DNA from: Botryllus schlosseri
Lineage: Eukaryota
NCBI GenBank assembly: GCA_051294905.1
Contig: CM119381.1
Span: 24,552,001 to 24,616,000, forward strand
Length of the DNA: 64,000 bases
Direction of reading: 5' to 3'
Within the stretch, counting starts at the first letter, position 1. Every line of letters begins with the position of its first letter. Positions 52,701 to 55,700 of the stretch are shown here, one piece after another. The position numbers were made by a program, and so were the translations under genes. Under the pieces are notes generated by a model. The model was not told the DNA's origin. It ran no database searches and saw nothing but the letters and a program-made list of their open reading frames with translations.

Positions 52701-55700
52701 AATTGGAGTAGGCAGTGGACACGTTTCACGAATTAGAATTATATCACCGTCATTTCGCTCTGCTTCGGCAATTAGAATGACCTTGTTGAAATCTGGTTGC
52801 AGGCTAGATAATAGTTAGTGTTTTCCCGAGAAGTCAACGATCAGTTATTCAGGCACCGGACAGGGCTTCGTCGTTAAGAAGGCAGACGAGTCGGTTATGG
52901 GAAGAATCGCGGCTTTGACGGTCGGGATTAAGTCGGTGGAGACGCCGATTGCAATCGAGATTCATCAGATGATCATCATACTCGCAGGTGTGTGGGGTTT
53001 CCTTGTAAGATATGTGTTTAAGCGCAGCATCCCCGGGCTCGACTCAGGCAGGGTTAAACAATTCCTTTTAACACCAAATCTATGTGCAATTGCCCGTTTC
53101 TTAGGTACCGCGCGCGGTATCGTGATTAAATGCGGTGACGATACCGTGATGGGACGTATCGCAACCCTGGCGTCTGGTCTCGAAATTGGCGACACCCCGA
53201 TCGCTCGTGAAATCGAGCATTTCATCCATATCATATCAGGTACAGGATGGCATCCTGCTGCTGCGTGTGCCCAATGGAATGCTGACTAATTCGACTTGGT
53301 TTCACGCCATTCGCTTTTAGACTAACATCCCTATCCTTTCCTGGTACCGACCTTCATCGACTATGTGATGAAAGCTGGTATTCTCTGTCTCAACCTTTTT
53401 GCATGTATCATTCTCTGATTCCGCTTGCCGCTTATAGGTATGGGTATCGGGATTTGCATTAAACGCGGTGATGACACGGTAATGGGTCGTATCGCGACCC
53501 TGGCTTCGGGGATCACGTCCGGATCGACCCCGATCGCGCGTGAAATAGAACACTTCATACATATAGTCACAGGTACTAGGTTTGGTAAAGTGGGAGTGCT
53601 GTCTGTGGGATGATAAGGCACTGCCTGGCGTGGACCTGCGCGTTGTGGTCCTGGGTTTTATCCGTGAGTGTAGCGTGTAAGTGTAGACTTGATTTGGGCC
53701 GGGTCTGTTCGCGTCTATTCATCGAATATTGATGGGGAAAAGTTAAATATACAGCCCAACTCATCAACGGAATACTGTTAAATAATGGATGTTTCGTGTA
53801 CTTCGCGTGATTGGTATTGACGTTGGAGTCCGTATGGCGAATTTAGCAGCGCGCGCACCTTGTCAGCATGTTCAACGGTTATGAATGATACGTCGCTTGG
53901 CTAGATATCTTTGAAACACTGTATGCATTGCATGATGTTAATCGGATTGCATGAAATTGTGTGTGGTATGCCTACGCCTTGTATCGTGCATGTTATAATT
54001 GTTTGTACAGGCTACTATCTGTAAGATCTCGTGTAGGCTGGGGTCAAGCCAATACTGGGAATTTGACCGACTTCGTTATTCATTTCGAGTAATATTACGT
54101 TTTATTACACTCCGTGATTAATGATTCTAACTTGAATCGGCTTGACTATAAAATGTCTAAGCTTAAGCCGTGAGGTTCTGTGGCCCGACAATTTGAGGAC
54201 GCAATTTGATCGTGTGTGCCGAGCTAACAGTGGCGGCTTTCTTTATGATCGTGTACGCTACCTGTTCGTAGGGGTGAACGACATCCACTTGAACAGTTAT
54301 CAGACTATGTACTAGAATCCGCTTATTCGTTGTACTAAATGTTTGCTTTGAGTTGTTGTTTGGACAGTCACGTTATACGGCGTACCGGGCTACAAATACC
54401 TTGTGTGAAATTTGTTGACCCGCTGACTATTCACGATATTTTCGACTATGCTCTCCGCCGTTATCGAAATCCTTATGTGTGCTGCATGATGGTGATAGTA
54501 TTTCGCGTGTGTCCGCTGTCGGTTGTGGTCACCGGCGAAACGCGCGACCCTTTGTGAATCGATTCGTTTTTTTGCCTGCCAGGAGTCGCCGTCTTTCTGG
54601 GCGTGACGTTCTTCATCATTTCGCTCAGTTTGGGATACAAACTGATCGAGGCCGTCGTGTTCTTGATCGGTATCATCGTGGCCAATGTACCCGAAGGCCT
54701 GATCGCCACCGTCACCGTGAGTAGTATTTTGCGTTATTTTTTCGGGTCGTATTGGCCTCGCCACAATGTGATTTGGTGAAGATAATCTAAATCATTGCGA
54801 ATTCTTGATATGATAAACTTTGCAGCGAGGTCAAATCCTTGATGCTCGTAAATGTGGAGTGTTCGTGTTTGAGTTATTTGATTTTGGTTTTCCAATGACC
54901 AACCATGATCGATTTCACCACAGTTCGCAGACTGTTGTCTCTTTGGCTTGTGACCGTATTGCATCTAATTTGAATATAACAAGTCGAAACGATGTGGTTA
55001 TGGGACTACTCCGTAGGGATGTACTGTAGCCAAGCTTGCTAAATTAAGTTCACCCGCTAACGATTGGGATAACGATATCGCGTACGCTAGGCATTCTCGG
55101 ACACGGTCTATTGACTGTGGTTTTGGAAATTAGTTACAGGCCGCTACACTTGCGTTCGATGTGCATTGCGCGTAGATGCGAGCGTAAATACACTGTTTAT
55201 GACCTGACGATGCCAATTGTCTTCTAAACTAGTCACCTCACTTCCTACTTAACTGGTCGTTGCTTTTTACTTACCACGCGTATAATATGGCTTGGTGCAC
55301 AATGGCGTACGCTTTGATCAATTCATGAATGGTTACGTAACTTGATAGTTTCTGGCTACTACCGTACTCGCCCGTAATATCCACAATAGCTGGCCATTCC
55401 GAAAGTACTGTATATACGATTTTATACAATAACTCCTGATAGTATATACTGCATTGTAAAATAATGTCCTGTTCGCGATATTCAAGTTTCGCTTCGTATT
55501 CACTCACAAATGCTCCCCAACAGAGCTGCGTAAATCTTAACCTTAATAGCTGAAGAGATTAATGTACTCATTCCGTATTCAGGTATGTCTGACCCTGACC
55601 GCGAAGCGTATGGCTCGCAAGAACTGCCTCGTGAAGAACTTGGAAGCCGTCGAGACCCTCGGCTCCACCTCGACCATCTGCTCCGACAAAACGGGAACCC

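Follow-up and report, generated by a model that had tools for sequence, protein, structure and literature searches.

We analysed a window of 64,000 nucleotides from Botryllus schlosseri (GenBank assembly GCA_051294905.1, contig CM119381.1, positions 24,552,001 to 24,616,000 of the forward strand), in which a multi-exon Na,K-ATPase alpha gene runs on the plus strand from about 46.8 kb to past the window's end. Between two constitutive exons of this gene, E5 and E7, stand three homologous exons of 135 nt, which we call A, B and C. We give a probability of roughly 70% to the reading that A, B and C are tandem-duplicated alternative exons of a single Na,K-ATPase alpha gene, one of which is placed between E5 and E7. 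Exon B is the dominant form in the RNA samples examined, and A and C are probably rare or tissue-specific pump variants. The exons and introns concerned are as follows, numbered by position in the window.

51969-52089, plus strand: E5, the constitutive upstream exon, an open frame that includes TGES and NCVEG; contig joint 52089>53105; its start at 51969 is a loose end
52853-52987, plus strand: exon A, 135 nt, which diverges most of the three and is altered in M3 at pig alpha1 positions 279, 282-284, 286, 288 and 289
52988-53104, plus strand: A-B intron, 117 nt, open in frame here
53105-53239, plus strand: exon B, 135 nt, the canonical copy, which is included in the abundant mRNA
53240-53437, plus strand: B-C intron, 198 nt
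53438-53572, plus strand: exon C, 135 nt, similar to B and differing from it at its first residues, in the linker (ITSGS) and at its end (VT)
54583-54716, plus strand: E7, the constitutive downstream exon, covering M3-M4 (GVAVFLGV...PEGL...TVTV); joints 53236>54580 (cut +3) and 54716>55583
55583-55780, plus strand: E8, the constitutive exon after E7, with the DKTGT phosphorylation motif

All three copies are open, preceded by AG and followed by GT, and they share one phase (2 nt, 44 codons and 1 nt). An original prediction, made from the letters of this stretch alone, had given the same exon coordinates, splice ends, common phase and intron lengths, and these proved exact. Nucleotide identity is 56% for A-B, 56% for A-C and 70% for B-C, and the corresponding amino-acid identities are 21/44, 22/44 and 33/44. 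B and C keep two common peptide stretches, 15 and 13 residues long, and their differences are gathered where the exon begins and within the linker (LEIGD / ITSGS / IKSVE), just as the prediction had described. Counted by codon position, the differences are 18/9/32 between A and B and 9/7/25 between B and C, a third-position excess (chi-square p ~0.001); for the B-C pair, dN is 0.20 and dS exceeds 1.

In pig alpha1 numbering these exons encode residues 246-289, from the last part of the A domain through the A-M3 linker into the beginning of M3. The whole of exon B can be aligned with the PDB chains of pig alpha1 (1016 residues), at residues 246-288, and of shark 2zxe, at 258-300, with the variable linker at pig alpha1 270-274 and the M3 start at 279-289. 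R262 and L266, counted from this alignment, fall inside the exon in MGRIA(T/A)L and are kept in A, B and C, which agrees with the placement claimed for them before. Against PDB, exon B reaches E values of 3e-16 to 4e-15 with Na,K-ATPase alpha and of 5e-11 to 1e-10 with H,K-ATPases, and the M7 exon gives the same ranking, with Na,K-ATPase alpha ahead of H,K-ATPase. Within the window TGES, PEGL, DKTGT and MVTGD follow one another in that order on one strand (51909-52133, 54558-54776 and 55550-55798), and GDGVND and the M5-M8 exons are in L004, the 10 kb beyond the window. The order TGES, PEGL (M4), DKTGT, GDGVND is that of a P2C-type ATPase. The PDB alignment and the P-type motifs thus uphold the identity first proposed for the exon, that of the A-domain/A-M3 linker/M3 segment of Na,K-ATPase.

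A six-frame search of the 495-Mb assembly found the 135-nt exon in three copies only, A, B and C, and the M7 exon in two copies only. Because all of these copies lie at this locus, Na,K-ATPase alpha appears to be a single gene in this genome.

A profile-free search with exon A against 1.84 billion representatives gave four matches. One of them, P0001, is close, with 73% identity over all 44 residues, and is an unspliced open reading frame. The other three have no bearing on the cluster: P0002 comes from a vertebrate-like assembly in which the exon pair is repeated, P0003 is H,K-ATPase-like and unspliced, and P0004 is a divergent ATPase. A homologous-protein search with the exon A region returned no candidates, and the 95-residue open frame round A retrieved P0001 only (sparse index).

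The contig of P0001, L005, is 7.8 kb long, belongs to the Logan assembly of SRR23343704 and retains the order A-B-C. Its copies A' (4319-4453), B' (4639-4773) and C' (4961-5095) are each 135 nt with AG/GT ends, and its introns measure 185 nt (A'-B') and 187 nt (B'-C'). Searching with the open frame round C brought up P0005. On its 786-nt metagenome scaffold, L006, an A-type exon of which only the end is present runs up to position 83 and is followed by a B-type exon at 250-384 and a C-type exon at 598-732, with an A-B intron of 166 nt. A scan of JGI metagenome contigs with A-type exons found nothing. Tandem homologous exons of equal length and phase, with splice sites of their own, are therefore present in the window, in L005, in L006 and in a more distant relative, L010, described below.

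Comparison of these lineages points to selection on the protein. The exon B protein is 100% identical in L005 and L006, with 15-21 of the 44 third positions different (dS 0.7-1.7). Between orthologues, codon-position differences are 11/3/27 for exon A (dN 0.22, dS 1.7, dN/dS ~0.13), 1/0/21 for exon B (dN 0, dS 1.7, dN/dS 0) and 7/4/28 for exon C (dN 0.14, dS saturated, dN/dS at most 0.1; ~0.07-0.2 across L005 and L006). When equal numbers of changes were placed at random, none of the 20,000 trials per exon reached as few amino-acid changes. The A-type exons form one clade with support 100/100, and introns among the lineages are unalignable save for a few short blocks.

Strain comparison gives the same picture. 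Exon A in strain contigs (sets X1 and X2, which also belong to the RNA evidence below) differs from the reference at at least six sites (52857, 52872, 52926, 52947, 52965 and 52983; the totals allow one or two more), and six of six are third-position, synonymous differences. The adjoining 117-nt A-B intron carries 19 substitutions and 1 deletion in an X1 contig. Each copy is thus under purifying selection as coding sequence, as seen between copies, between lineages and, for A, between strains. Such selection had been proposed for B and C; it is borne out there and now extends to A. Together, these comparisons are strong evidence that A and C have long been kept, and still are kept, as protein-coding exons, and such retention makes little sense without translation of A and C in some setting.

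The strain contigs also permit a separate observation. Under the same species label, they differ from the reference by ~16% in the A-B intron and by 0-4% in exons, a pattern that suggests that deeply diverged lineages or cryptic species share one species name.

The introns around the cluster contain candidate regulatory elements, again listed by position in the window.

52841-52852, plus strand: 12-nt element TCAGTTATTCAG adjoining the exon A acceptor, identical at 12/12 positions to L005 4307-4318
53400-53405, plus strand: TGCATG (Rbfox-type motif), 32 nt upstream of exon C
53717-53734, plus strand: conserved intronic block 2, 17/18 identical to L005 5264-5281
53929-53992, plus strand: cluster of three TGCATG, 357-415 nt downstream of exon C
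54263-54289, plus strand: conserved intronic block 1, 24/27 identical to L005 5832-5858
54483-54488, plus strand: a TGCATG motif match

(U)GCAUG is the Rbfox binding motif, and upstream sites tend to repress an exon and downstream ones to enhance it. Upstream of exon C the motif stands at 32 nt in the window, at 24-28 nt in L005 and at 26 nt in L006; downstream of C there are three copies in the window and four in L005 (at 358-503 nt), the L006 contig being too short. In total, the cluster region of the window has 5 TGCATG vs 0.71 expected, and that of L005 has 7 vs 0.62 (~7-11 fold). The enrichment in the window, about sevenfold, is on the sense strand only, and no motif lies near A. L010 has two copies (~1 expected), both downstream of its copy 3. 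A conserved (U)GCAUG near the exon is thus seen in three lineages and more weakly in L010, which suggests Rbfox-type control around exon C.

The conserved intronic elements persist although synonymous sites between the window and L005 are saturated, and block 1 is the core of an alignable stretch of ~150 nt (window 54200-54350). The blocks matched no Rfam family and had no convincing shared fold, and a search for inverted repeats in the cluster gave weak pairs only.

To see which copy is spliced, we used three RNA contig sets, X1, X2 and X4, from two studies. An abundant contig (depth 160-449), found in all three, carries the joints 52089>53105, 53239>54583, 54716>55583 and 55780>55844, where raw positions for the first two were 52087>53103 (cut +2) and 53236>54580 (cut +3). 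The abundant mRNA is accordingly E5>B>E7>E8>E9, with A and C skipped. A raw-read RNA run yielded 14 partial reads, which carry no information on exon use.

Several observations weigh against the alternative and exclusive use of A and C. Both exons are covered only by contigs of depth 3-17, 2-5% of the B depth, and these contigs run on into introns (for example 52796-53132, 52663-52988 and 53405-53638), so that pre-mRNA would give the same picture. None of the joints E5-A, E5-C, A-E7 and C-E7 is present in the three contig sets, and contigs drop rare forms. Protein databases searched with A-containing fragments yielded nothing beyond an unspliced genomic open reading frame. The original prediction was to fall if only exon B were ever spliced in; the limited RNA seen matches that outcome, and the evidence of selection indirectly contradicts it. 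Two ways of enforcing exclusivity also fared badly. Steric exclusion was rejected, as the introns (117-213 nt) are too long and too variable. Selector pairing with the two conserved blocks gave duplexes of -25 to -19 kcal/mol vs shuffled means of -28 to -19, docking sites elsewhere not having been searched.

The RNA data could be explained if A and C were unused relics of old exon duplications, that is, pseudo-exons left intact by inertia or chance, with B alone entering mRNA. Spliced contigs that show B only, an intron-level depth of A and C, and databases that hold no spliced A-containing protein fragment all favour such relics; we nevertheless consider them unlikely, since three lineages with near-saturated synonymous sites have preserved exon length, reading frame and the splice sites at either end. 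Over this divergence, exons evolving neutrally would have lost frame and splice sites, as a comparison with the unalignable introns indicates. Orthologous A and C comparisons moreover show third-position bias and dN/dS of 0.1-0.2, and the strain differences in A are all synonymous.

It is somewhat less probable still that A and C, as coding exons under selection, are added beside B, as A+B or B+C cassettes or by retention of the A-B intron. Such an addition would be open in this genome, where the lengths of the exon (135 nt) and of the A-B intron (117 nt) can both be divided by 3, and one low-depth X1 contig does span A, the A-B intron and the beginning of B. However, the intron has 185 nt in L005 and 166 nt in L006, so its frame is not conserved, and a designed retention of the open 117-nt intron was rejected on this ground. 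Contigs contain none of the joints A-B, B-C and A-C, and spliced transcripts with A or C are likewise absent there. Judging from known structures, a pair of copies one after the other would give the protein an extra half-helix and linker, a poor fit to the P-type fold. A role of A and C at the RNA level, as decoy exons or in the control of B splicing and not in translation, is very improbable: conserved non-coding elements do lie in the same introns, but an RNA element would not gather change at third positions or hold amino acids while nucleotides turn over.

We therefore return to alternative exons as the preferred reading, and we infer from sequence that the use of A, B and C is mutually exclusive. 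B would be the default, housekeeping choice, and A and C would be minor or cell-type-restricted choices, which exclude B when they are spliced in. The resulting pumps would differ in 44 residues only, in the last A-domain strands, the A-M3 linker and the cytoplasmic end of M3. Exon C would mainly alter the linker and the exon's first residues, and A would alter M3 as well. UGCAUG-binding (Rbfox-type) factors may steer the choice around exon C: the TGCATG in the B-C intron could favour B over C, and the downstream cluster could favour the last exon of the three. Because 135 is divisible by 3, reading frame and nonsense-mediated decay cannot enforce exclusivity, a point on which the original prediction was correct. 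An incompatibility of U12 and U2 splice sites was rejected too, as every donor is GT without a U12 consensus.

Movements of the actuator domain are passed on to the ion-binding helices through the A-M3 linker and the top of M3, and in P-type ATPases changes in the length or residues of this linker shift the E1/E2 balance. The isoforms may thus differ in E1/E2 balance, and three kinetically distinct pumps from mutually exclusive splicing are plausible. The three naturally selected versions of the A-M3 segment would be ready variants for structure-function work.

In arthropods, 2-4 exons of the Na,K-ATPase alpha gene form a mutually exclusive cluster (Lind et al. 2013, PMC3793950), with members in Drosophila Atpalpha, barnacle NAK1 (exon 11a/11b), Daphnia, Anopheles and Ixodes. 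The likeness lies in the protein family and in 2-4 tandem similar exons with one per transcript, and in barnacle NAK1, as here, one copy alone was seen in cDNA. The original prediction had placed the Drosophila cluster in about the same region of the protein, and this is not supported. A Drosophila alternative-exon peptide, NPEIDNLVNER, which ends at an intron/splice site (PMC2648944), matches ...DRLVNER in the exon of this gene just before M7, ~570 residues from the A-M3 linker. The Drosophila cluster, as placed by this one peptide, is thus in the M6-M7 loop, whereas the exons here encode residues 246-289 and belong to another phylum. The two clusters do not occupy the same protein segment, as orthology with arthropod Atpalpha would have them do. 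Given the different position and phylum, the cluster here is an independent duplication, and shared ancestry with insects is not supported.

Vertebrates diversify the pump in another way. Their alpha paralogues ATP1A1-4 differ in kinetics and tissue distribution, and they resemble the forms proposed here in being several alpha isoforms on a common core. In vertebrates, however, diversity comes from separate genes, whereas here it would come from exon choice within one gene. If expression is confirmed, a sister group of vertebrates would be shown to vary its pump through the choice of exons, where vertebrates rely on four genes.

Two well-known types of exon cluster offer further comparison. 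Rbfox-regulated mutually exclusive exon pairs are found, for example, in FGFR2 and in CaV and NaV channel genes. As here, homologous exons stand in tandem, with conserved UGCAUG in the intron that separates them and again beyond the final copy; in the present cluster such regulation is a prediction from motifs, and the two motifs of L010 both follow its third copy. Clusters of the docking-site/selector type, such as Dscam exon 6 and 14-3-3 zeta, pair RNA segments to make the choice. They share with this cluster more than two tandem variants and an exclusivity that is not enforced by frame; in contrast to them, no conserved complementary pair was seen here, the block duplexes being matched by shuffled controls. 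No description of the cluster was found in the literature library that was searched. A-B-C is likely a new mutually exclusive exon cluster of a known type, tandem-exon substitution, in a well-studied protein.

When JGI metagenome contigs were scanned with a profile of B and C, 35 loci came up, most of them single-copy, with one more distant relative among them. The single-copy loci are spliced transcripts, or genes in which the 135-nt exon stands alone or is fused to the one that follows. L010, L011 and L012, which appear to come from one organism, are 70-95% identical to this gene in protein sequence and have their introns at the same positions. All three (L010 at 4489-6058) have three 135-nt AG/GT copies at the same gene position. 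In the L010 cluster the canonical copy is in the middle, divergence is third-position-biased, and the first copy, like A, differs from the canonical one at 282, 283 and 286. In a tree of 44 columns the L010 copies could be either orthologues of A, B and C or of separate origin. In L007:516-987, a TARA plankton scaffold, and in P0008, a vertebrate-like fragment, the 135-nt exon is single and fused with the following 134-nt exon. The presence of an intron after the 135-nt exon goes together with the duplicated state.

A second duplicated exon pair was found by comparing the gene with itself. It lies 3.7-4.7 kb past the window's end (G000:C11:24619677-24620714), with coordinates in L004.

L004 3677-3822, plus strand: M7 exon X1, 146 nt, AG/GT
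L004 4569-4714, plus strand: M7 exon X2, 146 nt, AG/GT

The pair encodes residues corresponding to human alpha3 849-896, that is, M7 and the SYGQ loop, which contacts the beta subunit. The two exons are identical at 30/48 residues, with codon-position differences of 12/12/29. As 146 is not a multiple of 3, reading frame can enforce a choice of one of the two. Beside the arthropod site, the A-B-C cluster is the second and the M7 pair the third independent site of exon duplication in this protein. Combining the two, we propose, rather tentatively and with the balance slightly against it, that the gene could make as many as six pumps through two independent exon choices, one among three variants of the A-M3 linker and M3 and one between two variants of M7 and the beta-subunit loop, with the rare ones switched on by Rbfox-type factors in excitable or transporting cells. 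If true, the gene would achieve by splicing what vertebrates achieve with the alpha1-alpha4 gene family, and its A-M3 linker and position 282 would offer naturally occurring variants with a shifted E1/E2 balance.

Some minor features of the gene complete the description. ADIR..K before VDNSS (51909-51968) looked repeated and is actually the polypyrimidine tract of an intron. The intron at 55781-55843 is GT..AG and just 63 nt long, and it is removed in all three contig sets. The gene's first long intron contains, at 47285-48044, an 80-nt satellite array of ~7-9 copies (92-94% matches), and related short repeats of the GAATTAGAATT type lie within the E5-A intron (52266-52704).

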